A DNA stretch of 64,000 bases. It comes from Selaginella moellendorffii (lineage: Eukaryota; Plantae; Lycopodiophyta). Numbering within the stretch: the stretch's first letter is position 1; each line of letters starts with the position of its first letter. The notes under the pieces were generated by a model. It was not told where the DNA came from. It ran no database searches and saw only the letters and a program-made list of their open reading frames with translations. Both the position numbers and the translations under genes were made by a program. The stretch spans positions 60,452-124,451 of the forward strand of contig NW_003314266.1 in assembly GCF_000143415.4 (NCBI RefSeq), in the 5' to 3' direction. Of the stretch, positions 9,262 through 53,582 are shown in pieces.

Positions 9262-10510
9262 ATGGGGCGACGCTACATCACCGAAGGGGCGACGAGAGCG
9301 AGCTCGCACTGCGATAGCGGCGAGCGACGAATAATGAAGAGGAGCAGGGATTCAAGCGTGGATGATAAGAAAGCCCTAAGAAAGGTACCTAGAGATCACT
9401 GCTCTTTGTCTTAGTTCTTTTCCTTCCGGGTATTCAATCTGTGCTTTCAGGTAGCTAAGAAGATGAAAGCAGTCTCGGGCTACAGCAATCCCTTCGACTT
9501 GACTGAATTGTGAGTAGTTTCTTCTGCGTTCTTGGCAAGGTTTCTAGGTAGAGCTAATCCTTGTTTTCCAGGTTTGTGTGGAGGAAGAAGATCAAACGCG
9601 ACTTTGCGAAGAAAACACTGAAGGTGGAAGTTGAGAGGCAGGAGGAGCGAATGGTAAGTTAGGGTTTCCTTTTCCATCGTTTCTTTTGTTGCTCGGTTTT
9701 GCTCATGTTCTTGTGTTTTCAGAAGGAAGCCGAGATGGAAACCGAGAAATGGGAAGAACGAGCTATGGAGAAAGAAGAGGAAGAGAAAGCAAGGGAGCGA
9801 GAGAACGACCGGGAAGACGAGGTATGATATACATGTGTTTTTGAGTATCCTTTGGCAAACTCTAACGCGTGAACGCAATGCAGTGTCTCTACATGAGAGT
9901 CACGACGACTGATCTTCTATCCAGGCTCGTCGGCCTGAGGATGGCCGAGCCTTCCCACATCTTCAAGGGCCTTGGCGTGAAAGCAATGGAGGAGCTACTT
10001 GGCAAATTTCGCTTGCATTTGGAGGCGAACAAGAAAAATACCGAGCTCTGGGAGGCCATGACGGTTGTCTGCGACTCAGAGCTAGCAGAAGCACGAAAGA
10101 TAGAGGCTGGAGCTCGCGGTGGAGTGGACCATTTGGTGCTTGACAATGCTGGACTCCATACTAGCAATGTGAACACTTCCCTCATAAACATGAGCTCTCG
10201 TCAACTCCAGGAAGAGCAAGAAAATATTGAAGAAAAACTAAGATCTGGATCAGCCAAGAACGTCGAGTTCTGGAAGAGAGTGCGCGTCTTCAAAGCCAAG
10301 GTAAGCAAAAACGTCTTGTGCTTTGCTTCACGATTTAAGTTCTGACATAGTGCAAACTTACAGGCACGGCTCCGAGAAATAGCCATGGATCTTCTAGCGC
10401 AGCAGCACCACGAGATTTCAGGCGAGAAGGTTATAGAGGAAGCGATGCCTGAGCCGATTCCTCGTCAAGCGGTTCGAGGAGTGTCTGGCGCCAGCAGAGG
10501 GAAACACTAG
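9262..10510 (+). CDS. C-terminally truncated Cactin paralogue (6 exons, open frame, lacks the C-terminal Cactin domain)
   Basis: Exon-by-exon colinear with 11308-13207, with the same splice sites. The spliced frame stays open to TAG at 10508-10510. Confidence 0.65.
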
Positions 10511-10789
10511 AGCATTCAATCGATTGAAACGGCTCAAGCAAGAGAATCAATTTTTCTATATGTAAAATGATTTTAGTCAAATTGGCCGTGAGATTTTGCA
10601 GTTTACTGCCTCTTTTTTATGCAAAATTGGACATTTGTTTCTTCTTGCATTGTTTTCTATCGCTGGAAGACGAGACTTTCACGCAATTGACACCAGAAGA
10701 GTGCTGAAGAAACGAAGTCTTAGCTAGAGCACAAAAAAATAAATAGAAAGATGTACAAGCTTATGTAGAGATAAAGTGCCTCACAACAA

Positions 10790-11200
10790 AAGCTTGAAGA
10801 GAGATCTTCGTAGAAAGGGATGTAATCGAACATCGGTGGCCATCGCAAACGCCTCTTGTTCCTCTGGACGGAAAGCTGGATCATCAGGAACCTACTTGGG
10901 TAGAAGTCCAAGCATTTCTAAAGGGATGACGGCGTCCTCTTGCTCCTCGTCAAGGCCGTCGTTCTCATCAGGACAGGAATTCAAAGCCGGACGTCTAAAA
11001 CTTGGAATTTCTCGAGGTTGAGCTCGTGGTGTTTATCCGTCCTGATCATGAATGCCTGAGCAACAAAAAATTGAGGCACGAACAAGTAAAATTCAAAGCT
11101 TGCTAGGTTCTTGGATGCTGGGAAAGCTCATGAAAAACTCCACGATGCACATGGACTCTTGGCCAACTTTGAAAAAACTTAAAACACTTTAACTGTGGCA
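10790..11200 (-). pseudogene. Relic of the 3' part of the local F-box family
   Basis: Shares blocks with 19740-20180 (AGCATTTCTAAAGGGATGA, GTCGTTCTCATCAGG, AGGTTGAGCT, TCCACGATGCA) and a WPxMFD motif. Confidence 0.55.
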
Positions 11201-11307
11201 TTAAAGAAAAGGAGATTTTTGTTTATTGATAAAAATATTTTACTTACAACCTTTTGGCAACCTCCTATAAAAATGAGGTAGCACAGAGTTAGGGTTTATC
11301 GATTGAT

Positions 11308-13207
11308 ATGGGAGGTTGCGTTGATCTTGACGAGCGACGTAGAAGGAAGAGAGGCAGGGTGAGTCAATACACCGAGGAGGAGATTCACCATTATCTTGTG
11401 AAGAAAGCCCAAAGAAAGGTACCTAGAGATCACTGGTTTTTGTTTTAGTCCGTTACTAAATCCTGTGTTTTCAGGCAGCCAAGGTAGCTAAGAAGCTGAA
11501 ACCACAGTTGGTCTCGGGCTATTCAGACGACAGCAATCCTTTCGGAGACTCCAACTTGACTGAGAAGTGAGTAGTTTCTTTTGCGGTTTTGGCGAGGTTT
11601 CTAGAGCTAATCCTCGGTTTCTAGGTTTGTGTGGCGGAAGAAGATCGAACGCGACATTGCGAGTAAGACTCTGAACTTGAAAGATATCTCCGTGAAAGCT
11701 GAAAGGGTGCGCCAGGAGGAACAGATGGTAAGTTAGAATCTCTTCTTTAGATCGTTTGTTTGTTGCTCGGTTTTGCTCATGTTCTTGTGTTTCCAGAAGG
11801 AAATCGAGAAGGTTAAGAAGAAACGGGAAGAGAGAGCCATGGAGAAAGCAAAGAACGAGGAAGAGAAAGCCATGCTAGCAAGAGAAAGAGCAAGGGCAGA
11901 GTTCCAAGACTGGGAGAAAAAGGAAGAAGAGGTATGATATAGATGTCCTTTTGCGTATCCTTTTGCAAGTTCTAATTACGCGTCAATGCACTGCAGTTTC
12001 TTTTCCACCAACGGCAAGTCCGTGCCGAGATACGCATCAAGGAGGGCCGAGCCACGAAGATTGATCTTCTATCCAAGCTCGACGACTTGAGGATGGCCGA
12101 GCCTTACCACATCTTCAAGGGCCTTAGCGTGAAAGAAATGGAGAAGCTACATGAAGAACTTCGCTTGCATTTGGAGCTGGACAGGAAAAATACCGAGTTC
12201 TGGGAGGCCATGACGGTTGTCTGCGACTCAGAGCTAGCAGAAAGACGAAAGAGAGAAGCTGGAGCTTGCGGTGGAGAGGATAATTTGGTGCTCGACGATG
12301 CTGGACTCCATACCAGCATTGATCTAGACGTAAACACTCTCCTCCAAAACATGACCTCGAGTCAACTCCAGGAAGAGCAAGCAAAGATAGAAGAAAAATT
12401 AAGATCTGGATCAGCCAAGATCGTCGAGTTCTGGGAGTCCGTCCTAAAGAGAGTGCACGTCTTCAAAGCCAAGGTAAGCCATCTTGTGCTTTGTTTCGCG
12501 ATTTAAGTTCTGACATATCGATGCAAACGTGCAGGCACGGCTCCGAGAAATAGCCATGGATCTAGCGCAGCAGCACCACGAGATTTCAAGCGAGAAAGTA
12601 GAGGAAGCGATGGCTCCTCGCTCTCCTGAGCCGATTCCTCGTCAAGCGGTTCGAGGAGATGGGATTCCAGAGTTTGAGAGAGCAGAGCTGGGAAAGGTAG
12701 AAGACGGCCATGCTGAGTTTGGCTCCGGGGCGGAAGTCAGTGTGGAATCTGATCACGTAAACCTGTGGCGTGACAAGTACAGCCCACGAAAGCCTAAGTA
12801 CTTGAACAGGGTCCATACGGGATACGAGTGGAACAAGTACAATCAAACGCACTACGATCACGATTCTCCGCCACCAAAAACTGTCCAGGGATACAAGTTC
12901 AACATCTTCTACCCCGATTTGATCGACTGCACGAAGGCACCAACGTTTGCCATCGAGAGAGACGGGATCAGTGGCGATACTGCCATCATCAGATTCACTG
13001 CGGGTGCTCCATACGAAGATATTGTAAGTGTTTGATGTTTTCTCTTCGTTGTGCTCTTTGTTTTCCATTCTAACTTGTGTGCTACAGGCGTTTCGCATCG
13101 TCAACAAGGAGTGGGAGCGCTCCCCCAAGAACGGATTCAAGTGTACATTTGAGCGAGGTATCCTCTGCGTTTACTTCAATTTCAAGCGATATCGCTACAG
13201 GAGATGA
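11308..13207 (+). CDS. CACTIN: Splicing factor Cactin
   Basis: GYSDDSNPFGDSNLTEKFVWRKK, EFQDWEKKEEEF, PRKPKYLNRVHTGYEWNKYNQTHYD, GYKFNIFYPDLID and terminal FKRYRYRR. Seven exons. Confidence 0.95.
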
Positions 13208-13388: not shown

Positions 13389-14408
13389 TCAATCCTCGAA
13401 GTATGATCCCTGTTGGCTCCACTCCGGCGACGAATCCGACCAGCAGCGAGGAGCGTAACCCCAGTTGGAGTAAATCCATCTCTCCGCCAGCCTCAGGACC
13501 CCGCTCGAATCCAGCACCCGGTTCCAAATCCCCGACACGATGCAGTAGTTCCCATCGAAAGGCTCCCGGTGGTGCTTGCCGTGCATTCTCGTCGACACGA
13601 GCACCCCAAGATCCTGGAGCGCCCTCACAGCTCCTGGAAGTTGGCTGCGCCGGGTGTGAGCCCACGAGTGGAACTGCTGGCTGAAGACCACGCATCCCAG
13701 GAAAACTCCCAGGAACGCATCCACGGGGCCACTGCCGGGAGTCGCCACCAAAACCGGGACGAGAAAGATCGTTGCCGGACGAGCCAGCGAGTGGATGTTG
13801 TTGGAGAAGTCGCGCTTGGTGATCGTCCAGGGACGCTTGTGGTGCCCCTGGAACGCGTCGATCTGGGGGCCGAAGAGTGGAGTCTTGTCGTCGCCGTAGT
13901 TGTCGATCCCCCAGTGGTAGATGCCGGTGGCCAAGTCGGCTAGAACGTAGGCGGACAGGATGGCGAGTGCCGAGAGACCTGCGTCGGAGCTTGTCTCGAT
14001 GCCAGCCGCGGACTTTGCTAGCATTCCCAGCAGCGAGGAGCATCCGGCAAACACCCATAGCCTGTGCTCCATCGTCGAGCTCAAACTAGTATCACTGCTT
14101 CCCATGTCTTTGATCCTCGCAGCATTCTCCTTGTCCCAGGAAATGGTCTCGTCGCGGAGAACTTGGAGCACTGGAGGAGGAGCATCTCCCAACGCTTCTT
14201 CACGAGCTTGTGGAACTCTGGATGATCCCTGGAGCCTCGCAAGTTCTTCACGTGTGACTTTGAGTGATCCCTCAGTGTCGGTGTCCTTGACACAGATCTG
14301 GCAAGTCACCGCCTGCTGCCTGTAAAATCCCGATCGTCCCAAAGAGTAGTACCTTGTTGCAAGCTTTCCAGAGTAAGATGTGCTTCTCCATCCAGTGAGA
14401 ACTTCCAT
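13389..14408 (-). CDS. FAD4: Fatty acid desaturase 4 (TMEM189/Kua domain), plastid
   Basis: Intronless. GIYHWGIDNYG plus the histidine boxes FQGHH, FHSWAH and HGKHH. An upstream in-frame ATG at 14492 is an alternative start. Confidence 0.92.
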   Translation of the reverse strand: MEVLTGWRSTSYSGKLATRYYSLGRSGFYRQQAVTCQICVKDTDTEGSLKVTREELARLQGSSRVPQAREEALGDAPPPVLQVLRDETISWDKENAARIKDMGSSDTSLSSTMEHRLWVFAGCSSLLGMLAKSAAGIETSSDAGLSALAILSAYVLADLATGIYHWGIDNYGDDKTPLFGPQIDAFQGHHKRPWTITKRDFSNNIHSLARPATIFLVPVLVATPGSGPVDAFLGVFLGCVVFSQQFHSWAHTRRSQLPGAVRALQDLGVLVSTRMHGKHHREPFDGNYCIVSGIWNRVLDSSGVLRLAERWIYSNWGYAPRCWSDSSPEWSQQGSYFED

Positions 14409-14607
14409 ATCTCTTGCACTGCGTCCCAAAGTTCTCTGGTTCTTCGCAGCTCTCCCTTTTGTATCGTCATACTTGTGTATCAAATTCGTCATCGCAGTGG
14501 CGCTTTTTCCACCTCAAAAGCTCATGGCCGACGGTGGCGCTCGCTCCACGCTAGAATGTTCGCATACTCTTTATCCCCGGATATCCTCGCTGGCTTTGGA
14601 CCACGTA

Positions 14608-15708
14608 TTAGTCGCGGAGTTTAGCTGTAAAAACCGGGAAGCTTTCCTCCTCGGACCTGGAAACTTTGGCCGTTTTAGAAGCATAATTCGCTGGCTTCGA
14701 CCGTGCCTTCTCGCATCGTCCCTGCGGAGCTTGCGGGTTCCTGTTTTCTTTCATCTGGCCCTTGCGGATACCGGTGGTCGCGTCCATTTTTACTTGCCTG
14801 TTCTTCTCGCCAAGAACAGGCCTGCTCGCAGTAGCTTGTTTCTTCGATGGAGCATTCCTGTCTGGAGCCTTGGTGGATCTTAAGCTTTTCGCCCAGTCGA
14901 AAGTTTTCCCCCAGAAGCGTGGTGACAGTCGCAAAGTTTTTAGTTGCTCTTCCAGGCGCACAGGTTTTTCCGCTCCTATGAATTGCGTTTTAGTCACACC
15001 TTCCTTTTGTCTCGACTTAGTTGGGACTTTCTTCTCATCGCCACGGCGAGTATTGTCACTCGACTTCACGAGCTTTTTCTCCCTCGGGACGTTGTCTCTG
15101 GATTTTTCCGGATTGGAGCGTGCCAATCGCGTCCCTCCTACGTTCTCCTTTTGCAAGATCCTGACTCGTTGCTGAAAGTTCTTTTCGTTGGATGGCTTCT
15201 TACGGGAGACATTCTCTGCTGCAAAGCTTTTCTTCGACAAAGGGTCGCTTAGTGCCATCTTTTTCTCTTCACGCTCGCATTGTAAGTCGGCCAGCTTCTT
15301 TGACAACGCCGCGATCCCACTTTGCAGCTCTTCCTCGAGCCTACGATCGTTCTCATCTTCCAGCTCCGCCTGGACGATCGTTTCTAGCAGCTCTCCTTCA
15401 ATGTTACGATCCGGACCATGAATCCAGCATTCATCGAGACTTCTTTCCACACCACGTTGCAATGTAGCTGGCGTGGCCAAAGAACAAGCCTCTCTAAAAG
15501 CTGGATCATCGCTGAGAACTTTCCTCGTGGAAGTTAAGAACCCAAAAGACGCAGCACCGATCACGCCAACATTGACAGCGAACTTCCCAGTGGACGAGAA
15601 ATTCTTCGCTGCGGAGCTCCATGATCCCTTCAATCCAGGCCGCCGCTCGCTGGAGCTAGAGCTACTGCCAATGGTCTCGGACCGATAGGCCGCATTGCTC
15701 CAAACCAC
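14608..15708 (-). CDS. Unknown basic coiled-coil ORF (366 codons, no clear ATG), possibly a pseudogene
   Basis: Long open frame with a coiled-coil segment (ELEDENDRRLEEELQSGIAALSKKLADLQ) and a Lys/Arg-rich tail. It starts at GTG and I found no in-frame upstream ATG exon. Confidence 0.4.
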   Translation of the reverse strand: MVWSNAAYRSETIGSSSSSSERRPGLKGSWSSAAKNFSSTGKFAVNVGVIGAASFGFLTSTRKVLSDDPAFREACSLATPATLQRGVERSLDECWIHGPDRNIEGELLETIVQAELEDENDRRLEEELQSGIAALSKKLADLQCEREEKKMALSDPLSKKSFAAENVSRKKPSNEKNFQQRVRILQKENVGGTRLARSNPEKSRDNVPREKKLVKSSDNTRRGDEKKVPTKSRQKEGVTKTQFIGAEKPVRLEEQLKTLRLSPRFWGKTFDWAKSLRSTKAPDRNAPSKKQATASRPVLGEKNRQVKMDATTGIRKGQMKENRNPQAPQGRCEKARSKPANYASKTAKVSRSEEESFPVFTAKLRD

Positions 15709-16017
15709 AGCACACTCGCTGTGGAGGGCCGTGGTGGAAGAAGAATCATCAGGGCGCTGAGAAGCCGACGAAGAGGGATCGCCTGCCAGGCCAAGGCACC
15801 ACTAAGTCTTTCCGCTCGCTCAATCGAAGATTACCTGAGGGAAAGTCCTTGCACTGCAATGGCGGCGATCTGGCCGCCCTGCGATTGCAAGAGAGCTTGG
15901 ATTCGACCGCTCGCTTCTTCGTCTCCCTCGCCCGCCCGGTGCTCCACATTTGCTACGCTGCCTAGAACCCTAACGAGATTTTAGCCGATCAAATAAACCC
16001 TTCGTTTGCTCCGTTTG

Positions 16018-16160
16018 CTAGTTAAACGACATACTCTGTCATTTTCTCCATGTAAATATATACGTGTCCACTCAGCGTCCACATGAATCTCTTGCCACCT
16101 TGGATTAGACTCCAGGCTGGCTATCTACATCCCATGGCCCCTCATGTTCGACTTCGTCCC
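16018..16160 (+). repeat. Direct repeat, copy A (copy B at 19438-19603)
   Basis: CTAGTTAAACGACATACTCTGT...CATCCCATGGCCCCTCATGTTCGACTTCGTC is present at both positions with small indels. Confidence 0.85.
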
Positions 16161-16474
16161 TGGGTACAAAGATCTCCGAATGACAGCTCCGGATTTGTTC
16201 GAGATTAAAGAGGTTTCAACTTGAAGAAGTGAAACGTATTTCTCTTCTATTTCTCGCTTGATTCCTCAGCTTTCATTGTTGTAGCACTTCTTATAAACAT
16301 CAATTCGAAGGCCCAGCAGAGCGGCAGAGAGGGCGGCTACGGGGAGAGCGGCCGAACGAAAGGGGGTGGACACCCCTCTAGGTTTTTGTAGGGTTTCGCG
16401 CTAAGCGATCGATCCGGTTGGCCAGCAAAAGGTCAGATACTTCTGGTTTCTGTGACGATCAAATTTGTTATCAT

Positions 16475-17815
16475 ATGCAGGATATAGCCCGAATGGCCAA
16501 GGACCTCTTACAGCTCGCTCAGCCACTGCTTGATGTCCAGCCAGGATCATGCAGTGAAAAGTTTGGCGGTGATTCAAAGAGAATCAGGAAGGACGTCGCC
16601 ATGTTTTTGCTCAAGAGGATGGCTTTCCAGATGGAGGTGTCGGGGAATGCCTTCTCTAGCAGGGACGATCCGGCGTGGACAGAGTTGGGATACAGGCCGA
16701 TAGTCAGTCACTTCCTCGGGGCATTCACGTCTCTGGCTCTAAAGTTTGGGGAGCGCCTCGAAGAAGAAGAGGAAGAGGAAGAGCGCTACAATGATCCGTG
16801 TGTTGATTCGTTCCAGGATGACAAGAGTGTCGGAGAGTTTGCGAAGTGGTTATCGCTGGAGCTGGCTGACCGGGCTGAAGAGCAAGGGAAGGACGAGGAA
16901 GAAGAAGAAGTTCGCGATGATGTCCATAGAGAAAACGAAGTAGAAGACGAGGAAGAAAAGGATGGCGAGGGTGATAAAGACGATGAAGAAGATGAAGATG
17001 GTGAAGCTCACAGTGGCCGTGACTTGTCCAAGTTCTTTCCTCTCGATGAGCAAGCCAAGAGTTTCACGAACGAAGCAGTCCTCCTCCGGATGTATGGACG
17101 TGACCACGCCATCAACCAGCACATCACTCTGGGAGTTTTGGGTGGAAGAGGCGCGGATGAATGGCCGGACGATGCCTTCGAGATGTTCTACTACGGGTGC
17201 GCCGCCGCGATGCGCAACATACGAGCAGGAAGGATGGACAAGATCCCGTGCATTGCCGTTGGACTCAAATGGTGGGCTTCGGGAGAGATCGATCCGGTGG
17301 GCTTCGTCCGGGTCACCGCCAAGAACAAGATCACGAGCTCAAGCGCCGCAGCGTTCAAGTCCCACGTCGAACAGAAGTGTGAGTGGCTGGAGCTGCGAGG
17401 CCAAGGCCGCAGAGCCCGCAAGCTTAGGCGAAAGTATCTCCAAAAGAGCGATGAAGAGCTTATCGCTGCTCTCGAGGCGCGAGTTCGCGCAAGAACAGCC
17501 GAGGCCTCCATGAATCTCGACGAGAAATCTTTCCAAGAGGTGGAGCATCGCTACAAGTCCAGTGCATTCGCAGCCAAGCCATGCAATCTCCTCGTGGGAG
17601 AGGCCACATATCCGCCCCAATCCTCCACGATGCTGCGGTTTCCACTGGATAGAAACGCAAGGTCTGGCGATGGTGACAAAGACCTGGTGTCGGGGATGGC
17701 AAGGACGCTCTTTGGAGACCGTGTTCTTCGCTGGAGCTTGAGAAGCGTGGGGAAGCTTTCGCGGGATCGCGATCAAGCCACAAGGATCTTTGCGAGCTCT
17801 CTTGTAGCATCCTAA
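16475..17815 (+). CDS. Orphan-family protein with an intronless CDS and a long acidic insert; homologue of 22349-24287; possible inactive PD-(D/E)xK-like fold
   Basis: About 447-codon open frame from ATG 16475 (alternative ATG 16493). Telo-box near 16389. Motif-level homology to the minus-strand gene (see findings). Confidence 0.7.
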   Translation: MQDIARMAKDLLQLAQPLLDVQPGSCSEKFGGDSKRIRKDVAMFLLKRMAFQMEVSGNAFSSRDDPAWTELGYRPIVSHFLGAFTSLALKFGERLEEEEEEEERYNDPCVDSFQDDKSVGEFAKWLSLELADRAEEQGKDEEEEEVRDDVHRENEVEDEEEKDGEGDKDDEEDEDGEAHSGRDLSKFFPLDEQAKSFTNEAVLLRMYGRDHAINQHITLGVLGGRGADEWPDDAFEMFYYGCAAAMRNIRAGRMDKIPCIAVGLKWWASGEIDPVGFVRVTAKNKITSSSAAAFKSHVEQKCEWLELRGQGRRARKLRRKYLQKSDEELIAALEARVRARTAEASMNLDEKSFQEVEHRYKSSAFAAKPCNLLVGEATYPPQSSTMLRFPLDRNARSGDGDKDLVSGMARTLFGDRVLRWSLRSVGKLSRDRDQATRIFASSLVAS

Positions 17816-18050
17816 AGAACTTCTTCCATCACTTTCTTCGTTTCAAGAGCTCATCTTCTTCCAATCTAAAATACTCGGGCATTTTTCCAGATGCCCGCAC
17901 TGGTCATTTTCTTGAAGCGTTTTCGTACGAATATAGACGACGGCGGGAAAAAACATAAATTCGTGTTCTTGTGGGAAGTTAATTCAAGTGTTTGCGCTGA
18001 CGAGAAGACGAGAAGCTCAATCCCAGTGATTCCAGAGTGCTCGAGCGATA

Positions 18051-19392
18051 CAAGACCACGCAGCGAGCAACACACGACTCTAGATTGCGTGACCGCTCGA
18101 CTGCAGCAGAAGAAGAGGAAGGGAAAAATCTGTGCTGTAGAAAAATTCACTCAAGATCAGGGTTGGAGCGTGCTGGAAATTGTAGAAGAAATGACCACAA
18201 CTAATCCCTCTCTTTACAGGCACGGATTTTAAGAATTGGGCGAAAGAGATTTTGTTCCTCTTTCTCCGGGATAACTGTCTCCGAGTTGTCCAGGGGACAG
18301 AGCTTAAGCCAGCGGCAAGCGACAAAGATGAATGGCAGGTCAGAAATGATAAGGCAGTCTCCACCATAGGGATTGGCTTGAGCAAATTGCACCACCACCA
18401 CCTGGATATCACGAAGACTGCAGAAGAGAATTGGACAGCCTTGAAGAATGTATTCAGGAACCAAGCCAACCCAGAGATTTCAAAGGTTGAGTTAAAGTTT
18501 AAACTTTTTGGCTTAAAAATGGCAGCAGACGAGACTCTAGCAGCTTTTCTAGGAAGACTGAAGTCAGTGCTCTCCCAGCTGTCAAGTGTTGCTCACACCA
18601 GCCTTGAAACTGCTAACGCTGCCAGAGAATTCTTTGTTTGCTTTGAGTTGACAAACAAAGCTGTGGTTGTGGTTGTATCTGTGGGTGTTTGGTCTTCAGC
18701 TGGTTCTTCTTCATTGATAAAAGCTATTTGCATTTCAATGAAGGTTTTTGTTGAGTTCTTGAGCATAATCTTCAATGATTTGAATTCTGGGCGAACCAAA
18801 ACATTGAGGAGAATTACTTGCTTATCATTCTTGGTGACTACTTCACCTAGATTTGACAGCTGGGGGAGCACCAACTTCAGCCTTCCTAGAAAAGCTGTTG
18901 GAGTCTCGTCTGCTGCCATTTTTAAGCCAAAAAGTTTAGACTTCAACTCAACCTTTGAAATCTCTGGGCTGGCTTGGTTCCTGGATACATTCTTCAAAGC
19001 TGTCCAGTTCTCTTCTGCGGTCTTCATGATATCTAAGTGATGGTGCTGCAATTTGCCCAAGCCAATCCCCATGGTGGAGACTGCCTTATCATTTCTGACC
19101 TGCCATTCTTCTTTATCGCTTGCCGCTGACTTAAGCTCTGTCCGCTGGACAACTCGGAGACAGTTATCCCGGAGAAAGAGGAACAAAATCTCTTTCGCCC
19201 AATTCTTAAAATCCATGCCTGTAAAGAGAGGGATTAGTTGTGGTCATTTCTTCTACAATTTCCAGCACGCTCCAACCCTGATCTTGAATGAATTTTTCTA
19301 CAGCACAGATTTTTCCCTTCCTCTTCTTCTGCTGCAGTGAAGCGGTCACGTGATCTAGAGTTGTGTAGCCTTGCTGCTCGCTGCGTGGTCTT
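18051..19392. mobile_element. Inverted duplication of a Ty1/Copia gag fragment (arms 18051-18585 and 18853-19392)
   Basis: The arms are reverse complements. They encode IPLFTGTDFKNWAKE...W.VRNDKA...AEENWTALK.F...LFGLKM..DETL..FL.RL, typical of Copia gag (DUF4219/UBN2). No LTR or pol seen. Confidence 0.85.
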
Positions 19393-19437
19393 GTTTGCCC
19401 ATGAGATCATCGTTTGCTCAGAGACCATGTTAGTTTT

Positions 19438-19603
19438 CTAGTTAAACGACATACTCTGTTTCCCCTAACTACCACTTTGTCATTTTCTCCATGTAAATAT
19501 ATACAAATCTTGTGTCCACTCATTTCAGCGTCCACGTGAATCTCTTGTGGATTGACTCCAGGCTAGCTATCTACATCCCATGGCCCCTCATGTTTGACTT
19601 CGT
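19438..19603 (+). repeat. Direct repeat, copy B
   Basis: Matches 16018-16160. Confidence 0.85.
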
Positions 19604-19736
19604 CTTAGACAGCACAAGACCTGGATCCATTGGCGTCTCCACAGGCTTGCAATCTTGCATGTTGAACTTGTCTGTCACTTTCTTTCCCGGATGATACGAG
19701 TTAACAGCAACGCGCTCGGATGGCAAGAAATGTCAA

Positions 19737-21235
19737 GAGTCACGGTGTTACAAGTTCGAGCATTTCTAAAGGGATGATAAAATGCAAAACTGGAATACCT
19801 GGGACAGTCAAGCGAAAGTCCGCGTTGGGTGCCGCTGCCAGAAAAACTTTTGTTGCCTCCTTGACAGCTTCTTCTCTCTCATCGTCAGACTCGTCGTTCT
19901 CATCAGGGCTGAGATTCAGCAGGGGGACATCCAAAACTTCAAGCTTCTCAAGGTTGAGCTTCTTGTATTCGTTGCTCCTGAATACCTGGTCACCAACAAA
20001 CAGATCCATCCAGTGAGGCATGAGCAATCAAGGAAAGTGTAAAGCCTATGCACAACATGTTTAGGTTCGTCCTCAGCTCTTGGATGCACTTGAAAAATTC
20101 CACGATGCATAATGACTTTTGGCTTTTGTCTCCTGAAAAGCTTGGAAAAAGTTTTAGACACTCCAATTGTGGCATTTTCCCAAGAAAAGACTATGATATG
20201 ACTCCAACTTTCCAACAGTAAAACAATCGCCCCCTACTTCAAGAATGCATAAGATACTAAATGGAGAAACTAACTCTAAGGATCTGATGTGCAACCTCTC
20301 AAGGATCTTACCTTCTGTAACCAGTCATCCACTCACATTTGTCAGTGCCACCATTTTGAGCTTAGGAGTGTCAACAGTGATGACACCTGTGCAATCCTGG
20401 AGCTCCAAGTAGTACACGTTGGGGTTGTGTAACTTGAGGTTTGTCAGCGCCACCATTTTGAGCTTGGGAGTGTCAACAGTGACGACGCTTGTGCAATAAT
20501 AGAGCTCCAAGTAGTACACATTGGGGTTGTGTAACTCGAGGTTGACATCCACCAGATGCAACCTCAGGTACCCCAAAAGCGTTGCCATGTCACAAACTCC
20601 TCCAGATCTTTCTTGGCACTCTCACTATCAATTCGAAAGCCTAGAGTGCATTGCGTGAGCATTGTGAGCGTGGGAGGACTTTGCATTGGAGCTCTCTGCT
20701 TGAGCCGACTGTGAGCTGCCCAAGGTGAGTAGCGGCCGAGAGGAATGAGAGATCTAGTTCTTTGTCTGGAAGCTTGAGTCACAAGAGCAACACCTTGAGC
20801 CTCAACGTGAAGAGATGGCTGCTGTTGTGCACTACTGCCTCCCAGACCATTGGATTGGAGCGATTAAGAAAAAGCTGTTCCATACTGTGGATAAAAATTG
20901 AGGAGATGGCAAAGCGCTTGCTAGAAGCACGTACACTGGCACTTCCCCAGGTGGAGCTGACATGGCACATACGATGGCTGTTCAAAGAAAGATCTATCCA
21001 TGAAGGCTTTCCTCCACAGCTTGCAAACCAGAAGAATTGCCATGAGTGAATACATATTCTGTAGCTTCTTGAAAATCTGCAAAAGGAGCTCTAGAGGAAA
21101 ACGCTCAATTGCACTAGAAGCTGGAGCCAAACGCTCGATCTCACTGCAAGATGGTGCCATTGGAAGACGCTTAATCCCACTGGAAGAGGAAGCCATTGGA
21201 AGACGCTCAGGATTCGCGCTGGAAGATGAAACCAT
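19737..21235 (-). pseudogene. F-box/LRR-like pseudogene
   Basis: F-box IERFPLELLLQIFKKL...LVCKLWR, followed by a premature stop at 20921 and frameshifts. It has N-terminal repeats of about 39 bp (ERLPMASSSS) and an internal 102-bp tandem duplication. Confidence 0.75.
20338..20541. repeat. Tandem duplication of a 102-bp LRR-like unit
   Basis: LHNPNVYYLEL..CT.V.TVDTPKLKMVALTN occurs twice on the minus strand. Confidence 0.85.
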
Positions 21236-21727
21236 CAGAAGAACCCGAGAATGCAGCGAAATAAGAAAAGAGGAAGACGCTCGACGGAAGCGGAGCGGAA
21301 GATGAAGAACCCTAAAATGGAACGAAATATTGAGACGTTAGAGGGTTTCCATGCGAGCGGCCACAACCTGGGTGGAAAAGCTGGAAGATCACTATGATCT
21401 GAGCTCTTATCGTCTTGTCTCGCTCGCGTCGATCCTCAGAGGTTGCGAAGAAAAACTCAAATCGGAAGAATGCGAGTGTCGTGGGAAGAAAAGTCCTCTA
21501 TCTGCAAGCGCTTAATGATCGATCGTCCTTGGAGCCTCTCGGCGGAGAAGGTATTCCCATTCCCGCCGCAGGCCATTGTGTGGGTGTATTCTCTTTACCA
21601 GTGCATCCAGGCGCACGCAGCATGGATTCAGAGCAAATCCAAGCAAACTGCCTGTTTTTATTCCTCTCCTCCAGGAGGAAGCATTCCCGGCGAACACTGC
21701 CAATGCCACAACAAAGAAGAATCCTAT

Positions 21728-22060
21728 GGTGAAGAAGATGAAGATGGTGAAGCTCATAGTGGCCGTGACTTGTCCGAGTTCTTTCTTCTCGACGAGCAAC
21801 CCAAGAGTTTCACGAACGAGGCAGTCCTCCTCCGGAGCAGATCACGCATCAGCGTTCAAGTCCCATGTCGAAAAGAAGTGTGGCTGGAGCTGCATGGCCA
21901 AGGTCGCAGAGCCCGCAAGCTTCGGCGAGATCTCGATGGAGCGCTCATCTTGGATGGCAAGGACGCTCTTTGGAGACCGTGTTCTTCGAGAAGCGTGGGG
22001 AAGCTCTCGCGTGATCTCTTTGTGGGCTCTCTTGTATATTCGTTTCAAGAACGCATTTAG
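21728..22060 (+). pseudogene. Internally deleted copy of the 16475-17815 gene
   Basis: EEDEDGEAHSGRDLSEFF.LDEQPKSFTNEAVLLR, LELHGQGRRARKLRR, MARTLFGDRVL and SVGKLSRD are joined by deletions and frameshifts. Confidence 0.85.
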
Positions 22061-22348
22061 CCAGGGGCATTTGCTTAAAGCGTTTTCGTAGGTAAAACCA
22101 TAAATTCGTGTAAGATCGAGAATCCAGCAGCTGTACTGCGTTGATCTCTTCCACAGAGATGGGAGCGAAACACCTTGAAGAGCAAATAAAAGGGTCGAGA
22201 AACTATATGAAGTGTTTTAGCTGGAGCGTGTTTCTGTGTGGAATGTAAGGAAAAGGTGGAAGATCACTAAACAAAGAGGTTGATATGAATTTCTCGTATC
22301 ATCTAACTGGCTCAATGTGAAGCTCCATTAGAGCTTGCGAAGAAAAAC

Positions 22349-24287
22349 TAAAGTCTAGAAGACGTGCTCTTCAAAGTGACTATATAAAGCTTAAGGGGAG
22401 CTGCACACAGTTTACCAATATTGACCACTTGACCAGCTTTTCCCACTCTCCCAACATACATTCTGACTTTGCAAACTCCAAGCATCATCCGAGAATTTGC
22501 AGGCGCTGTGAAAAGATCAGTAAAAAAGAAAACAGGCTTTCCAGAGCATCAAATTTACCAAGCCATCTGATGCTGAGCGAGCTTTAGAAGTACTCACACC
22601 TGACTCAGAGACACAGACGTGGACTCAGACCTCTCCTTCTTTACCACTGTAATCTATATTTGAGCCTTCAATCAAAAACCAGAAGCTAGAATCATACCTG
22701 TTGATGGCATTCTGGAATACGTTGCTGACAAAGAAGACAAAAAGTATTCAATAGTCTGCTGAATGGAGGCTTTCCACTTCGCATGATTGTCTTCGATGTC
22801 AGCTGATGTTAATGTAAGTGCCCGATCTCCAATAAACGTGCGGATCAAAGAAGTGAAGAACAGCAAGCCACCTTTATTGATAGGTTTGTCTGGACTTGCA
22901 GGAAGGGTCATCTCCTAAAAACATAAACATACATGTATAAACAAGAAGTAGAGCAATTGAAATACATGCTAACCGTTGCACAGAAGTGTAAACTTCCAAG
23001 CACATATTCATCGTCTGGAAATTGATTAAGATGGAAATACTGTTCAGAGAGAATCCGTGTGAAATCTCTCAACCTGGACTCCAAATCTTCCAAAGATACC
23101 TTCTCCTTGTCTGTAAATCAAATCTGTCAAAAATAAATGTAATTTGACTAATCTAACCTTGAATTGCCGTGTGAACGTTCAAGATCGTTCCATCTTTAAC
23201 CGTCACGATACCTTTTGGTCTTAGTACGCCGTAATTCCATCCTATAAAACACAAAACTTAGTTTGTTTAACCTGAAAGCTCCTCCTTTACCTCCTTTATA
23301 CCAATGATGAACGTAAATGGGTTCATATCTCCCCTTTTTCATGTTCAATTTGGCTGCTCGGATGGCATAACCAGCACCCTGATCAAGCTTCGTAGTAGTT
23401 CCTTTCCAGTCGCACTCGATAATAATCACAGTAACCAGATTGTTTGCTGGATCGAGCAACGGATCTCGAACATTTCCCTGAAACAAACAAAATCAGCGCA
23501 TACTAATCAATGTTTTTCTTTCTTGCCTTCAGATCATATCTGTCGAGGCCAACAAGATCATTTGGATCAAGCACACGCTCCTTGCCTTCATCCCCTTCGT
23601 GTCGAATATCATCGCCTTCTTGTTCAACCAATTGCACTGCCGAAGTTTTTTTGGAGTCAAAAGAGGGGGAGAAAAAAAAAAACAACTTACGATCTTCTAA
23701 TTGAAGCTGCTCCTTTCCTCCAACAACCACCTCGGAGTCTGCTTCTAGAGATGGGCTCGTAAGGAGCCTTATATTTTGTAGAATACTGGCGTATACAATT
23801 TTTGCGCCAAGTTCGGTCCCCATAGCTTTGAACTGCTGGCTAGTTCCTGCAACAGGCTCTAGAAGATTACCAACCGCTGCCTTGAATGCTGCTTCATCCA
23901 TCAGCTTTCCATCAGAAACATTATCTGGTGGCATATACCTCCGCTCTGGAACTACCTTGATATCCACAAACGGATTGTTTATTTCCAGTAAACGCCTATC
24001 GTAGCTGCTTTTCTGTAAACGAAATTTCATAAACATCTTACCATGGAAACCGAAACACTCACCTCTGCCTGAAAAGGGTTACCGAGATACTTGGCCCGTT
24101 TATTTGGTAGATCGTCCCAATATTTGTTTCCCACCTTTCTCTTGGACAAATTCGAAAGCTCTGCTTCCTTTCGAAGCACACGCTCCCGTAGACTTTCCAG
24201 CTCGCGAGATATCTTTTCTGCCTTTCGCTCCTCTGCTTCTTTCTTCCTTGTCTTTGGTACCACGGCCTTCCTAGCAGCCGCTCGCAT
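22349..24287 (-). CDS. Multi-exon orphan-family gene with putative PD-(D/E)xK (REase)-like motifs
   Basis: Phase-consistent exons 24287-24063, 24012-23691, 23636-23527 (GC donor), 23477-23291, 23241-23158, 23110-~22973 and ~22914-22698. The last small exons to a stop near 22349 are less certain. Telo-box near 24405. Confidence 0.7.
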
Positions 24288-24777
24288 CGTGCTGAGATGA
24301 GCAGCAGAAACCAATCGATAACCGCGGTCCAGCCCTCAGAGCAATTGATGATCCTCGAGACGCAAAGCAGGCCACTACAAACCACCAAAGCCCTAATGAG
24401 ATTTTAGGGTTTAGCTAAAACCTCCTTTTCTCAACGCTCTAGGGTCTAATCAAAAGGAAAACATAAGCAAAATATTCTATTTGTCAATCTGCAGTATAAT
24501 CCAGATTATAATTAGCAGTATTATAATTAGATTATCCAGAGATCAGCAAGGCCTTCGGGTCGGTTTTCCAAATGATGTCAAAGCCTTCCTTCAGCTTCTT
24601 TCCCGTTCGTAAAAATTGTTTCGAAAGTATCTTTAATAATCAAGTGGCAGCTCCACCTAAGTTCTAAAGTATTATACACCTTGCATTTTCTCGAGGAGAA
24701 GTTTTACCTTCGGCCTCTTTCACCGCACAAGGCATGCGACACATACAGTGGACACGAGCCGAGCCGGGAACTAGTTT

Positions 24778-24886: not shown

Positions 24887-25640
24887 ATGGCACTCGTCTC
24901 AGGCAGCAGCATCGCAACTCTCTCTTCTTCCTCTCTCATCTCCAACAAGCTCCACCTCCAATCCCAATTGCCCAGGAGCTCCAGCTCGCGAAATCTAGTG
25001 GTGAGAGCGTCCTCGAACAAATCAAGGGATGGTGGCGATGGCGGCATCAGTGGCGTTCTCGACGGCACCAAGAAGGAGATAACCCGCGAGGAGGTGCTCA
25101 AGAACCAGGCCGAGAACGAGTCGGAGAAGCGCTCCGTGTTTGGAGCCGTCCCATCGTCCGGATCCTTCTATCCCAGGCCAGAGGTCGAGAGGCGACCAGA
25201 GACTGGCGATCGATCGTTCCCCAGCTTGATGGCGTTCGATGGAGCCGGCCCGGAAACGATCAACGGAAGACTGGTAAGCGATTGGTGATTTTTCTTCGCG
25301 TTTTTTTCTAGATCAACCAAGTAAGTAACGTGAACTTGTCAAACAGGCAATGGTAGGATTGGTGTGGGCATTCGCAGTGGAGCGAATGACGGGACAAACG
25401 GTGGCGGAGCAGCTCTACTCGCCGGGGAGCACTGGTCTTTTCCATTTTCTGGCGGTGGCACAGCTATTCGCGTACGCGTCGCTGGTGCCCATGTTTAAGG
25501 GCGAGAGCCCGGACAGCAGATCGTTTGGGCCATTTAGAGCCATGGCGGAGCGCTGGAATGGGCGAACCGCGATGCTTGGCTTCCTCGCCTTGGTGATCAC
25601 CGAGTTTTTCACCAAGACTCCAGTGTTCCACATGATGTAA
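24887..25640 (+). CDS. ELIP: Early light-induced protein (LHC superfamily)
   Basis: Exons 24887-25273 and 25347-25640. AFDGAGPETINGRLAMVG, ASLVPMFKG and AERWNGRTAMLGFLAL. Confidence 0.95.
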
Positions 25641-26500: not shown

Positions 26501-26682
26501 AAATGGTGACCTTATGGCAGATGTGCTTGTAGCTCTAGATCAATATGGGATTGCTCATCGTCTACATGATCATCATAGGTAAAGTCACTTTTTCTCTCAC
26601 ATCTACTCTCCTTTGGAACCATTCTTTTTTTGTTCTCGAGCATGTGTTTCACCTTTGTTTCGTCCCCGTGCCTTCCAGGTGG

Positions 26683-26910
26683 TGCCATGCGATCTCATAG
26701 TGGGAGAGGCTACATATCTGCCTCAATGCTCCGGTTTCCACTGGATAGAAACGCAAGGTTGGGTGATGGCGGCAAAGAGGATGGCAAGACCATATTGTGT
26801 TGGAGACCGTGTTCTTCTCTGGAGCTGAGAAGCGTGGAAAAGCTCTCGCGTGGCCATGGTGAAGCGACAAGAATCTTTGTGAGCTCTCACTTATTTTCTT
26901 CGTTTCAAGC
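26683..26910 (+). pseudogene. 3' fragment of the orphan family (third copy of the 17575-17815 segment)
   Basis: PCDLIVGEATYLPQ, MLRFPLDRNAR, GDRVL, LRSVEKLSR and ATRIFVSS. Confidence 0.8.
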
Positions 26911-27078
26911 TTCGTGGAAGTTAGGACCCGAAAGACGCATCACCGACATCCCACCGTCCCTAGTGAACGAGAAATATTTCGTTGTGGAGCTCCATGATCT
27001 CTTCAATCCAGGCCGCCGCTCGCTGGAGCTAAAGCTACCGATAGGCCGCATTGCTCCACAAATTCTAGGGTTCTTTTG

Positions 27079-28257
27079 ATGGCTCCATCTTCCAGCGCTT
27101 ATATACTCACTCGTAGCAATTCCAATGGTTTGCAAGATATGGATATTTCTTGCTTCGAAGAGCCAGAGGTCAGCTCTACTCGGAGTTGAAGCCCCGGTGC
27201 GCATGCTTCCATCTCCTTGAATCATTCTGCAGCCTAGAAGATCTTTCGCTTGGTCAAGGCAGTAATGCGCAACGGCAGCCATCTCTTCACGCCGAGGTTC
27301 AAAGTCTTGATCTTGTGGGTCGAGTTTCCAGAAGTACTTCTAGAGCTAGATCTCTGCTTCCTCTCCTTGGAATCTCCACACCTTGAGGTGTTCTCCATCG
27401 GCTCATTCTTGGCTATCCAATGCAAGGCCCTCCCACGCTTGACGAGGCTCACGTGATGCAGTCTAGGCTTTCGAATCGACAGGCAGAGTGCCAAGACAGA
27501 TCTGGAGGAGTTTGTGAGCATGGCAACGCTTCTGGAGTACTTGAGCTTGCAAATGGTGGACGTCAACCTAGAGTTACACAACCCCAACGTGAACTACTTG
27601 GAGCTCCTGAGTTGCACAGGCCCATGGCACTGATAAATGTGAGTGGACGACTGGTCACACAGGGTAAGATCCTTGAGAGGGTGCACTTTTGTGGTTTGTT
27701 CTAGCTAAATGTTGTTTCTTCTCTGCTTAATTTGTTATGTAATTTGGAAATAGTGTTCTTCAGTTGGAGTGCTAAAGTAATATTTATAGTCTTCCAAAAG
27801 GAATAAAAGCCAGCATTTTGGATTTTTTCATGCGCTTACCCAGCATCCGAGAGCTGAGGACGAACCTGAGCATGTAGCGGATAAGCTTTGCAGTGTACTT
27901 GATTGATTATTTGATTCATCGGTGCCTCACTGGATTTTTGTTGGTGATCAGGGATTCAGGAGTGACAAACACAGAAAGCTCAAACTCGAGAAGCTCCAAG
28001 TTTTGGACGTCTGGCTGCCATTTTCCAGCCCAGGCGAGAACAACAAAGAGCAAGAGATGGCAACCAAAGTTTTGCTGGCAGCAATTGACTGTCGAGATTT
28101 CTATAGATCATTCCTTTCGAAACGCTTGCACTTGTATTTCACAGGGAATTTTGATTGGCGTTACCGTTCAAGGTGGCCCCGAATGTTCAACGACAAAATC
28201 TGCCAACAACAGCTCCGGAAGAGGTTGAAACTTCAAATGGTATTTCTCTTCTATTAG
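27079..28257 (+). pseudogene. F-box family pseudogene, paralogue of 19737-21235
   Basis: Shared segments SHLFTPRFKVL, VDVNLELHNPNVNYLEL, LKLEKLQVLDV, ATKVLLAA and WPRMF, with multiple frameshifts. Confidence 0.75.
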
Positions 28258-45780: not shown

Positions 45781-48071
45781 ATGGCGGAGGAGAGCTCCAC
45801 TCCATCGAGACAACACAGGTTTGGAGTCTACCAGAATGCGGCGATCGCCTCGGCGCTGGATGCGCAAGGGTCGAGGAGGAGCTCGCCGCCAGCGATCGTC
45901 GCGCTTGTTTTCCTCGTTTCCACTTGGGGATTGCTCTCGATTTCTTACCGGTGAGTGGGCTCTAGGGTTCTTGGCAGGGTTCTAATGCTCACACTGTTAG
46001 GAAGGAGACGATCAAAGACACAATGCGGCTCTTTGGGCTCACGTATCTCTTCGCAAGTAAGATCTTTCTATCTTTTCTATCTCCTTGGTACTGATGGAAC
46101 AAAAAACTAACGTAGAAACTACCGTGAGACTTTGCCAAGTCGTTCTTACGCTCGTCTTCCTCGGTGCATTGTCCGCGTTCTTGAAGGCCATTTTTTCTTC
46201 CGAGGAAGGCTACTTCGTTTTCAAGTCATCTTCCCAGATTTCATCGCCACTGACACCACGGCAGGAGATGCTACTTGGAAGGCGAAGCTCAAGAACAGCA
46301 CTGCCGCCGCCAAAGACTGCCAAATCTCCGACCGCGGTTTCTCCAAGCACGATGTTCCCGATCCATCCTCCGCTGTTCAAAGGCGGAGTGAAAGGAAGTG
46401 GCCAAGCTCTCGGGGCTGCATCTCCAGCAACACCAGTGCAAGTGAGTACATTTCCATACACACCATCAGTGGCTTCTTCTCCAGACTCGAGTTTTCTTCC
46501 GTGGACGCTCAAGTACAGGAACGATGAGATTCGGACTGAGGAGGAGCTTGAGAGTTTTCTCTCGGACGTGGGAACTAGAATGGTCGAGTCTTCAGGGAGA
46601 TCAGGCAGCACTCCACAGGGTGGTCCAGTTACGCCATCGCCAATACGAGTTCTAGGTGCCGGCTCCGGCCCAAACGTGATGAGCACTACACCTCGCTCTC
46701 CAGCAACTGCAGGGACACCGGTACGAGCCGTAAGGGTCTCGCCAAGTTCTCAAAAGTCGGGTGTTTCGCCAAAGAAGGCAGAAGGTGATCTTCCTGCTCC
46801 TTTCACAATCGAGCAGGCAACAGATGGCTTTAAAAAGCTGGGCTTGTGGCCTGATATCGACCAGTGGAGAGACGGTCTCAGACAATGGTTTTCGGACGTT
46901 CTGCTTGCGCCACTGCTCTACAAGATCGACAGGAGCCATCTACAGGTAGCGAGCAGTATTGGTTTTCATGCCATGACAATGCTTTTATGACGTTACAGGT
47001 TATGGAGACAGCGGCAACACTTAGTTTTTCCTTGGCAATCAGTCCGATCGAGGGTAAACGCAATAGCAACAGCAGTCCTGGAATGGATGGGAGTGCACAG
47101 GAATGGCTCACGACATTTGCTCCAGACGAGGACGCGCTTATTCATCAGTTTCGTGCATATCTGCTAAACGCTAAAAGCTCCACGCCGAGTAAGTTTTTGA
47201 GTTGACGAAGGCTGAACGTCTCTCTAACAATGCTCGTGTCACGCAGCACCATCTATTTTCGGGCTGAAGGTTCCGAACGAACAGGATGTGAATCCTTTAC
47301 TGCAAGCGTGCCTCGATGCCGTCACTGAGCATCAACGATTGCGTGCTCTTGTAAAAGGCGAATGGGTGAAAGGACTTCTCCCCCAGAGCAGTGTGAGATC
47401 AGATTATACGGTCCAACGTCTGCGAGGTACTCGCTTCTCTTTCTGTTTTTTTCTTTCTTCAGTTTTGACGAATGCGTGAAATATGTTCATCTTCCAGAGC
47501 TAGCCGAAGGCACTTGTGTCAGGAAGTACGAGTTTGCTGGAACGGGCGAAGTTTACGACAAGTCAACGAAGCGCTGGAGCTTGGAACTTCCAACAGACGC
47601 TCACCTCTTGGTCTACCTTTTCTGTGCGCTGCTGGAACACCCACAGTGGATGCTGCACGTCGATCCAACATCTCACCCGAGCACTCAGTCAGGCAACAAT
47701 CCACTCTTTATCGCCAGCCTTCCACAAAAGGAGCGGTTTCCAGACAAGTATGTGGCAGTCTTATCAAGCGCTCCTCCAGTGTTACATGCTGGTGCGTGTA
47801 TTCTAGCCGTCGGCAAGCAAAGTCCTCCTGTCTTTGCTCTCTACTGGGATAAGAAGCTGCAATTCTCGCTTCAGGTAAACAAGCTCTCTTCCATTTTTAT
47901 CGCTTCTCTGAAAGAGTGTTTCTCCAGGGACGAACCGCACTGTGGGACGCGATTTTGCTCCTTTGTCATAGGATCAAAGTCGCGCATGGTGGGATTGTTA
48001 GAGGCATCAATCTCGGCGGCCCGGCTTTTAATCTTCTGTCGCTGCTGGAACAGCCTTGTGGCGAGAATTAG
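45781..48071 (+). CDS. TMEM209/PNET1-like nuclear-pore membrane protein
   Basis: FGVYQNAAIASAL, TM helices, LTPRQEMLLG, WRDGLRQWFSDVLL.PL, WSLELPTDAHLL and YWDKKLQFSLQGRTALWD. Confidence 0.88.
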
Positions 48072-48459
48072 CGAAAGAGTCATCTTCACTAGCTTTATAG
48101 TTCGGGAAGGGTACTTATTTTATAGACATATCTAATTTTAATGTTCACATCCTTCTACAAATTATTAACTTGACAAAAATGTAAGAGTAAATAATATAAT
48201 TTGTTTTAAATTTTATATTATTTTGAAAAGTAAAAAATAATTTATTATGCTACTTTACAAAATAAAATATATAAGTAATAAAAGGAAATAGCTTGAAATA
48301 ATTAAGTTTGTAAATGTTTGATTAAGAGTTTGTTCATATTTAGTAACAAATAGGTCTTAAGTTTAACTATATTAATTAGTTAATAATAAGCAATTCTTTG
48401 AGATCCATAAATGCTTGTTCACAATCCTTATATCATACAAAAGATGATGTTGACAACTT

Positions 48460-49080
48460 TAGTTAATACTCACAATAGTGCAATACGATTAAAAAAATGA
48501 TTGACAAAACAATTGAGATATTACACTTTGCCTAGGAAGCATTGTATATCATTCATACACTTCAAAGTAGGGAATTTCAAAATAACTATAAATTTGTCAG
48601 AATTAACTTGCAAACCTTCATGAGAAATATAATAAGTTGTGTCCTTAAATCTAAAGATGCATTTAAACTATTTTAACTTTAAACTAAATTCCCGCAGCCA
48701 TCCCAACACTTTACGAACATCATAGATATGATCCTCCCATGTCCCTTCCAATTGGATTAAGACATCATTATGAAGTTAATAGTCACTTTTGGCATATCAT
48801 AGAGAATCTCATCCATCATTTGCTAAAAAGTCATTGAAGCATTGTTCAAATTAAATGGCATTACCATCAACATTAGATGAATTTGTGCTAAGTGAATCCT
48901 TTGATAGTACTCCCAAAAGAAGGATGAAAGGGTCATTGACTTATTTATATGTGCAAGGATCCCCCACTATTCACATAATTATTCATTTACCAAAAGAATC
49001 TCTATGTTAAAACTTTCCATGGTAGCAACACAAATAGGACATTGTTGACGCCAAAGCCTCCACCTAGGAAATAGAGGATG
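48460..49080 (-). mobile_element. Decayed Ty3/Gypsy reverse transcriptase fragment
   Basis: The minus strand reads VMPFNLNNASMTF*QMMDEIL (compare MPFGLxNAPATFQ), KCIF..ISHEGLQV and IQCFLG. Confidence 0.75.
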
Positions 49081-49150
49081 TTAATTTGGAAAACACTTAT
49101 GTATGAATCCACTCATTCTTTGCTAAATGTGGGTCTTCTTCCTTCTCTAG

Positions 49151-49481
49151 CGGATGCTCTCTTCTCTATCAAGCAGCAGCTGGGTCCTTCAAATGCAAAT
49201 CTCTCTTCTTGGGCTGGATCCGATCCTTGCAATCCTCTGTGGAATGGTGTCGGATGTACTGGAAACCGTGTTACAGCTCTGTAAGTCTTGGAAACTTTAA
49301 TTCCCTTTGTGATTGGTGTGTTGTGTTTGTATATCAGGAACTTGACAGGGTTTGGCTTGATCGGAAGCTTTCCAGATGAGCTGGGAAACATCACAACGCT
49401 GGCAGATCTTGACCTCCAGGAGAACAACATTACGGGGCCCGTGCCAAAGTCCTTGTCGAGATTGTCCACACTGAGATCACT
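49151..49481 (+). pseudogene. Stranded N-terminal exons of an LRR receptor-like kinase or protein
   Basis: Exon 49151-49280 encodes LRRNT (LSSWAGSDPC..WNGVGC). A 144-nt exon at 49338-49481 encodes two LRRs. Splice sites are intact but there is no signal-peptide exon and no continuation. Confidence 0.8.
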
Positions 49482-51830: not shown

Positions 51831-52008
51831 TTGTTCCACTTGTATGTAGCCTAAGTGTTCAATAGACTCCATTCAAACAAGTGGAAAAATGTTCATCAAA
51901 TATTAATCTTAAGACCTAGCATTAGCAATTTGTAGCAATCACAAAGGTAAATTCAACTTTATTGGTAGTATTGAATCATGATTATATAAGAGTTTATATA
52001 AAGAAGCA

Positions 52009-53377: not shown

Positions 53378-53582
53378 AATTTTATAATTATAAGCATGTT
53401 TGTAATTTATAAACACAAGATTAATCTTATTGTATATCAGCCATTAGATGGTAGAGTAAAATAGAATATACTAGAAAGTGTTTAAGAAAGTTTATAAATT
53501 ATAAACATATTTATATTTTATAAATACAAGATTAATCTAAATGAATAAGAACCATTAGATGGTAAAATATTCTAGAATATCC
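53378..53582. repeat. AT-rich tandem duplication of about 110 bp
   Basis: TTTATAAA.ACAAGATTAATCT...CCATTAGATGGTA occurs twice. Confidence 0.7.

Follow-up and report, generated by a model that had tools for sequence, protein, structure and literature searches.

Do two orphan genes that lie close together in the lycophyte Selaginella moellendorffii, one intronless and one rich in introns, belong to a single protein family, and does that family have the PD-(D/E)xK fold of restriction endonucleases (REases)? A first-pass annotation, made from the sequence alone, had proposed both for a 64,000 nt stretch of contig NW_003314266.1 (the window, corresponding to scaffold GL377570.1, ~60.5–124.5 kb). 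We designate the intronless gene, at 16475–17815 (+), gene A, the spliced minus-strand gene, gene B, and the paralogue of the latter, B2. That B is a stand-alone REase-fold (PD-(D/E)xK-like) protein is, judged from its sequence, a prediction of moderate confidence; the whole explanation, in which B and B2 are functional stand-alone REase-like proteins and A is an offshoot lacking the site, is one that we favour on balance. Our verdict from sequence comparisons is that B and A appear to form a new, lineage-restricted and unnamed spikemoss family.

RNA data confirmed the spliced gene B on the minus strand. Its seven introns (47–59 nt) are skipped in RNA-type contigs from two studies and in stranded raw reads from a third study, and the joined exons give an open frame of 444 amino acids (aa). 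Reads were mapped to window positions 21300–24700; depth over B is low (15 reads from ~12% of one run), the reads are consistent in strand, and one sequencing run reads through the B introns, i.e., it behaves like DNA. The predicted junction between KGG and WNYG is present in X1 contigs and in one X11 read. Intron 3 is of the GC-AG type, with its RNA joint (23476/23526) found in three runs, and the same GC-AG intron occurs in the B allele and in the paralogues. For the seventh junction the RNA comes only from the other allele, in which the joint is offset by 3 nt because of an indel. The end of B had been placed at 22349, and here the model had to be corrected: a last exon running to that position was rejected, since the only RNA contig over the 3′ end, which derives from the other allele, retains 22473–22643 without splicing, and the frame therefore stops at the TGA ending at 22594.

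The four public NCBI/JGI models of the B family (SELMODRAFT_406128, 403679, 402783, and 408099), annotated as hypothetical proteins, all miss the GC-AG donor and so drop the DRYDLK peptide with the candidate catalytic aspartate; the NCBI model P0004 is without the LDRYDLK peptide, and in SELMODRAFT_406128 and 403679 the 3′ ends are wrong as well, extending into a relic of A. Skipping this donor thus hid the motif from database searches, a practical trap in which one splice site deletes the candidate catalytic aspartate from all public models. Besides B, the assembly contains three further copies, the allele SELMODRAFT_403679 and the B2 pair (402783/408099), which is on other scaffolds and shows 66% protein identity to B. 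All seven introns, including the GC donor, are kept in every copy, and the ratio of non-synonymous to synonymous substitution rates (dN/dS) between B and B2 is 0.31 as a whole and only 0.09 within the motif core, from which it follows that B is a conserved, functional gene. B is expressed and under purifying selection.

Both alleles of B are transcribed. They are only 92% identical in DNA (window 22450–24658 against 9629–11829 in L005, the other haplotype), with a synonymous divergence (dS) of 0.125; the flanks of B are 94–98% identical between haplotypes and the alleles of B2 have a dS of 0.033. This divergence could be due to balancing selection or to an old introgressed haplotype.

The likeness of B to REases lies in the series E142...D217...E240-x-D242-x-K244...Q252xxxY256. 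In order, T-E142 lies on a predicted helix and is followed by an acidic linker, D214/D217, a hydrophobic strand ending in E240-C-D242-W-K244, a helix with Q252xxxY256 and a W-containing hairpin; residues E142, D214, D217, E240, D242, K244, Q252, and Y256 are invariant in all four B copies. D217 (or D214), absent in A, is fittingly spaced from E240 and is a candidate for the aspartate at the start of core strand 2. All the B copies have the two features that mark some PD-(D/E)xK families, an acidic residue in helix 1 and QxxxY in helix 2; A keeps TE and Y, but the positions aligned with D, E, and Q no longer carry these residues. We evaluated the pattern D...hhhE-x-[KDES]...QxxxY, relaxed to admit D at the lysine position, which is matched by 51 of 62 real HsdR-N domains. 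It also matched all four B copies, 13 of 20000 shuffles, none of 194 open reading frames (ORFs) from the window and no copy of A; adding the N-terminal TE helix left two matches in 20000 shuffles. The motif spacings of B resemble those of HsdR-N, and the order of elements predicted for B by a low-confidence model, helix-(strand)-strand-helix-strands-helix, is compatible with the REase core topology (PMC3424549). Independently, a feature search of the ESM Atlas with B2 retrieved HSDR_N as the best named family (0.87), together with unnamed Basidiomycota clusters at 0.91–0.92 (28/30 matches).

The REase-like motif order noticed in the first reading is real and conserved in the four B copies, but these have E-x-D-x-K where E-x-K is canonical, and other results also weigh against an REase fold. 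The strict (D/E)-x-K pattern fails in every copy of B and A; migrated, non-canonical catalytic residues are documented in the PD-(D/E)xK superfamily (PMC3424549). The relaxed pattern was written after seeing B, so that 13/20000 overstates the case, and the invariance of the residues is weak evidence among four copies that are at least 66% identical. Searches, for which we used single B exons or incomplete database models of B, produced no match in Pfam, NCBIfam, PHROG, PADLOC, or PDB sequences. Custom HsdR-N profiles, built from 62 and 12 domains, failed to match B (hhalign E of 0.71 and 0.33), with 10 of 100 shuffles matching the HsdR-N profile as well as B did; profile comparison thus does not place B in HSDR_N (PF04313), nor does Pfam. 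AlphaFold reached a predicted local distance difference test (pLDDT) score of 44 for the database model of B, which lacks 11 D-strand residues, and of 55 for the core of A, with 7–8 alignment rows, and six fold searches with these low-confidence models returned no convincing REase and carry no weight either way. The Atlas value for HSDR_N is below 0.9, i.e., at the level of a lead. The PD-(D/E)xK proposal hence gains a weak language-model pointer to HSDR_N, but neither models of sufficient confidence nor matches in the fold and HsdR-N profile searches.

Homolog searches gave S. moellendorffii copies only, or nothing: a phmmer comparison of exon 4 with 1.84 billion representatives retrieved only B and one paralogue, and scans of metagenome, viral, GTDB bacterial and archaeal, plasmid, and phage sequences, which are weak for distant or eukaryotic kin, found no relative. 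Two further phmmer rows were dismissed as noise, being short, multi-stretch matches.

Since no family matched B significantly in sequence, profile, or structure, B might be a lineage-specific protein with an alpha/beta fold of some other or new kind, and its REase series a product of pattern-matching by eye. We regard this as unlikely, though a contender, as few shuffles and no background ORFs fit the motif pattern and the language-model lead, which is independent, points to HSDR_N. Less plausible for the core of B is a thioredoxin-like fold, degenerate and devoid of CxxC, with a coincidental REase motif. The weak top Foldseek rows in PDB, BFVD, and Atlas are indeed thioredoxin or peroxiredoxin folds (E 0.02–0.3), and a profile of 64 thioredoxins aligns with B residues 257–313 (E=0.027, 3/100 shuffles). 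Nevertheless, this alignment covers a single hairpin, hidden Markov model scores are negative, B contains no CxxC and has no significant profile or fold match to the thioredoxin superfamily, for which reasons we keep it as a minor rival.

A different doubt concerns activity, and it is a sub-case of the explanation that we favour, not an addition to it. With aspartate in place of the motif-III lysine, B could have an REase-like fold and be catalytically dead or repurposed as a nucleic-acid or protein binder, which we consider rather doubtful. Strict E-x-K occurs in no copy, A is wholly devoid of the site and inactive REase-fold domains are common (PMC3424549; CifB domains 1 and 3, PMC11342252), but the acidic residues and QxxxY of B are maintained under strong purifying selection and a lysine, K244, is found two residues further along. 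Assuming an REase fold, we predict that B is an active nuclease with slightly better than an even chance, the alternative being a binder.

The relationship between A and B had been deduced from four blocks of protein similarity, which are indeed present and colinear, with block 2 ungapped and 13 of 41 residues identical; as also reported, the two genes show no similarity at the DNA level. Block 2 alone is not significant, and the Smith-Waterman score of A against B (BLOSUM62, 41) is that of shuffled sequences (39 ± 6). A profile-profile comparison, on the other hand, supports a single family: hhalign aligned 159 columns of the A and B family profiles, including blocks 2–4, with E=6e-4, a score of 35, and an HH probability of 21–28%, and this score was beaten by none of 250 column shuffles (16 ± 3) and none of 250 block shuffles (18 ± 3, maximum 32). 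Global alignment over the whole length scored 348, vs. 238 ± 27 in shuffles (0/500). The first 95 residues of A (block 1) align with B2 nearly without gaps (p ~0.03–0.05); an anchored test over the whole N-terminal half was not significant, and only those 95 residues gave such values.

These comparisons argue, with modest strength, that A and B are probably homologous, and we are rather confident of it. It is quite improbable that they are unrelated and that the four blocks are chance matches chosen by eye, even though the BLOSUM62 local score is at chance level, the pair was picked among many possible pairs in the window, and the best chance match from 7.3 Gb of plasmids (tblastn E=9) equaled the hhalign score, at 35.5. 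That match falls within domain 4 of an archaeal-type helicase, not in a nuclease domain, so we rejected it as due to chance. The helicase, however, is the top match out of 7.3 Gb, whereas A stands among a few dozen neighbors; likewise, the shuffles (0/250 and 0/500) contradict a chance origin, the blocks are colinear along the whole length and the nearly ungapped N-terminal alignment, of 70 residues, is separate, if weak, support.

Gene A is an intact ORF, as described, and it is also intact in the other haplotype, the start common to both being the second ATG (16493). The GC content at third codon positions is 0.61 in A vs. 0.43 in B. Its alleles are separated by 5 synonymous and 15 non-synonymous differences (dN/dS 0.85, from small numbers), and another copy ~5 kb beyond the end of the window is frameshifted in both haplotypes, with dN/dS values against A of 0.53 and 0.29. 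The family had been called fast-evolving, and this suits A, nearly neutral and with many broken copies, but not the core of B. Both of the relics ascribed to the family were found, with 75–94% DNA identity, although they derive from A only and not from B. A few sense-strand reads map to relic 1, and their source could be any A-like copy. Among the public models of the A family (SELMODRAFT_403678, 406142, and 403694, annotated as hypothetical proteins), 406142 and 403694 are chimeras of A pseudogene pieces joined to the F-box gene. Our preferred reading of A is an ancient intronless branch of the family that it shares with B, by now duplicated and in decay along with an F-box cassette; either retroposition of A or a gain of introns by B could account for the difference in structure.

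Copies similar to A repeatedly adjoin copies of the same F-box gene (L001, 10000–12700; L002, 10000–12760; window, 26646–28044). The haplotypes differ by a rearrangement of the stretch from A to B (window 16001–21340 against L005 12000–19660): in L005, A is within ~2.7 kb of the end of B and adjoins the relic, while in the window haplotype a copia-gag fold-back and the F-box gene separate them. A short direct duplication (16033–16158/19474–19604) marks one end of a rearrangement.

The fold, catalysis, cell location, and biological role of B are all inferred. The REase-like domain would lie behind a basic, coiled-coil N-terminus whose K/R clusters could give B a nuclear location. Mg2+ or Mn2+ would be bound by D217, E240, and D242, possibly with the assistance of E142, and K244 or D242 might replace the usual lysine; the action of B on nucleic acid could be nicking or cutting, or no more than binding. 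A would have lost the catalytic residues and been copied and broken together with the F-box gene in an unstable region, being at most a non-catalytic binder, or decaying. A defense role for B is a conjecture drawn from the functions of related domains.

The closest named counterpart is HSDR_N, the nuclease at the N-terminus of type I R proteins, and its stand-alone bacterial forms, which share with B the order of (S/T)E helix, D strand, and hhhE strand, followed by a QxxxY helix and an aromatic hairpin, with approximately the same spacing. In contrast, B has E-x-D-x-K instead of E-x-K and lacks a TNG motif; its first helix is followed by an acidic linker of ~60 residues, it has a basic N-terminal and a helical C-terminal extension, and it gives no significant profile match. 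Crinkler/RHS effectors, to which the first-pass annotation had linked the motif order, contain a eukaryotic REase-type series E...D...E...Q, are reported in land plants and combine a header domain (e.g., ubiquitin-like) with NTPase plus REase or REase plus kinase domains (PMC5289972). In B, no ubiquitin-like header, P-loop NTPase, helix-turn-helix, or kinase was detected, and the typical E-x-K is absent. Neither the spliced B nor A shows such a header, NTPase or kinase architecture, and we therefore do not classify B as a Crinkler protein. The highest feature similarity to B2, up to 0.92, is that of the unnamed Basidiomycota clusters of hypothetical proteins (277–349 aa, ESM Atlas), which belong to no Pfam family and resemble B2 in language-model features.

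A much bolder reading, which we deem very improbable, would make B an active, domesticated plant nuclease from an REase family, as yet unnamed, that has an E-x-D-x-K site and is otherwise confined to unnamed basidiomycete proteins, through a possible fungus-plant transfer, and A its dead intronless partner or decoy, kept adjacent like an antitoxin or regulator; if true, the pair would be a linked nuclease/pseudo-nuclease system in a land plant. Returning to the explanation that we favour, should the fold be correct, lycophytes would gain in B a stand-alone family of REase-like proteins, rich in introns and conserved by selection, whose site is the non-canonical E-x-D-x-K and whose intronless sister has no site; it would also offer a small natural system for nuclease domestication and inactivation in plants. 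The impact would be limited, since land plants are already known to have REase-type (Crinkler-like) genes.

Table 1. Coordinates of genes A and B and of associated features in the window.
Feature	Position	Strand	Description
B exon 1	24063..24287	-	ATG at 24287; N-terminus basic and coiled-coil-like, containing K/R clusters; supported by RNA joint 24012/24063 and translation
B exon 2	23691..24012	-	TELG helix; candidate motif-I glutamate E142 (23814-23812)
B exon 3	23527..23636	-	Acidic linker, then LDRYDLK peptide with candidate catalytic D217 (23535-23533); GC donor at its end
B exon 4	23291..23477	-	Hydrophobic strand with E240 (23417-23415), D242 (23411-23409), and K244 (23405-23403)
B exon 4 (continued)	23291..23477	-	Helix after the strand, with Q252 (23381-23379) and Y256 (23369-23367)
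B exon 5	23158..23241	-	WNYG and subsequent strands; RNA joints 23240/23290 and 23110/23158
B exon 6	22974..23110	-	Helical (low-confidence secondary structure); RNA joints
B exon 7	22698..22914	-	Blocks 3 and 4 (RTFIGDR, FLSSL)
B exon 8, coding part	22594..22646	-	Stop TGA 22596-22594; splice 22643/22698 in X1 contig of the other allele
Gene A	16475..17815	+	Intronless 446-aa ORF with long acidic insertion, without D/E/D/K/Q site
A relic 1	21730..22050	+	Three deleted, frameshifted pieces; 84-94% DNA identity
A relic 2	26646..26899	+	3' part only, ~75% DNA identity; adjoins F-box relic
F-box gene or pseudogene	19694..21235	-	Between A and B; Pfam F-box-like; not a family member
Copia gag fragment fold-back	18050..19394	.	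Between A and B; inverted duplication, 93%, arms ~540 bp

On the far side of A there is an orphan gene at 14608–16000 (-), with an ORF of 366 aa (429 aa in the public model), no Pfam match, and pieces that recur at 26912–27058, and an intronless gene at 13389–14492 (-) with a lipid desaturase domain (PF10520, E 1e-66), which we take to be FAD4-like. Head-to-head with B, ~600 bp apart, is a gene of the chlorophyll a/b-binding family (24887–25640, +; weak PF00504), presumably ELIP-like. Close to B2, at ~2 kb, is a gene for an Ulp1-like peptidase (Peptidase_C48; L003 13792–15984, L006 14179–16376); Ulp1-like peptidase genes are often transposon cargo. Elsewhere in the window, a 1.2-kb tandem duplication with 75% identity (9367–12658) resembles the F-box gene located between A and B, and an AT-rich block at 48000–54000, with a GC content of 0.25–0.30 in most bins and internal inverted and tandem repeats, differs from the rest of the window and is possibly a non-autonomous transposon.

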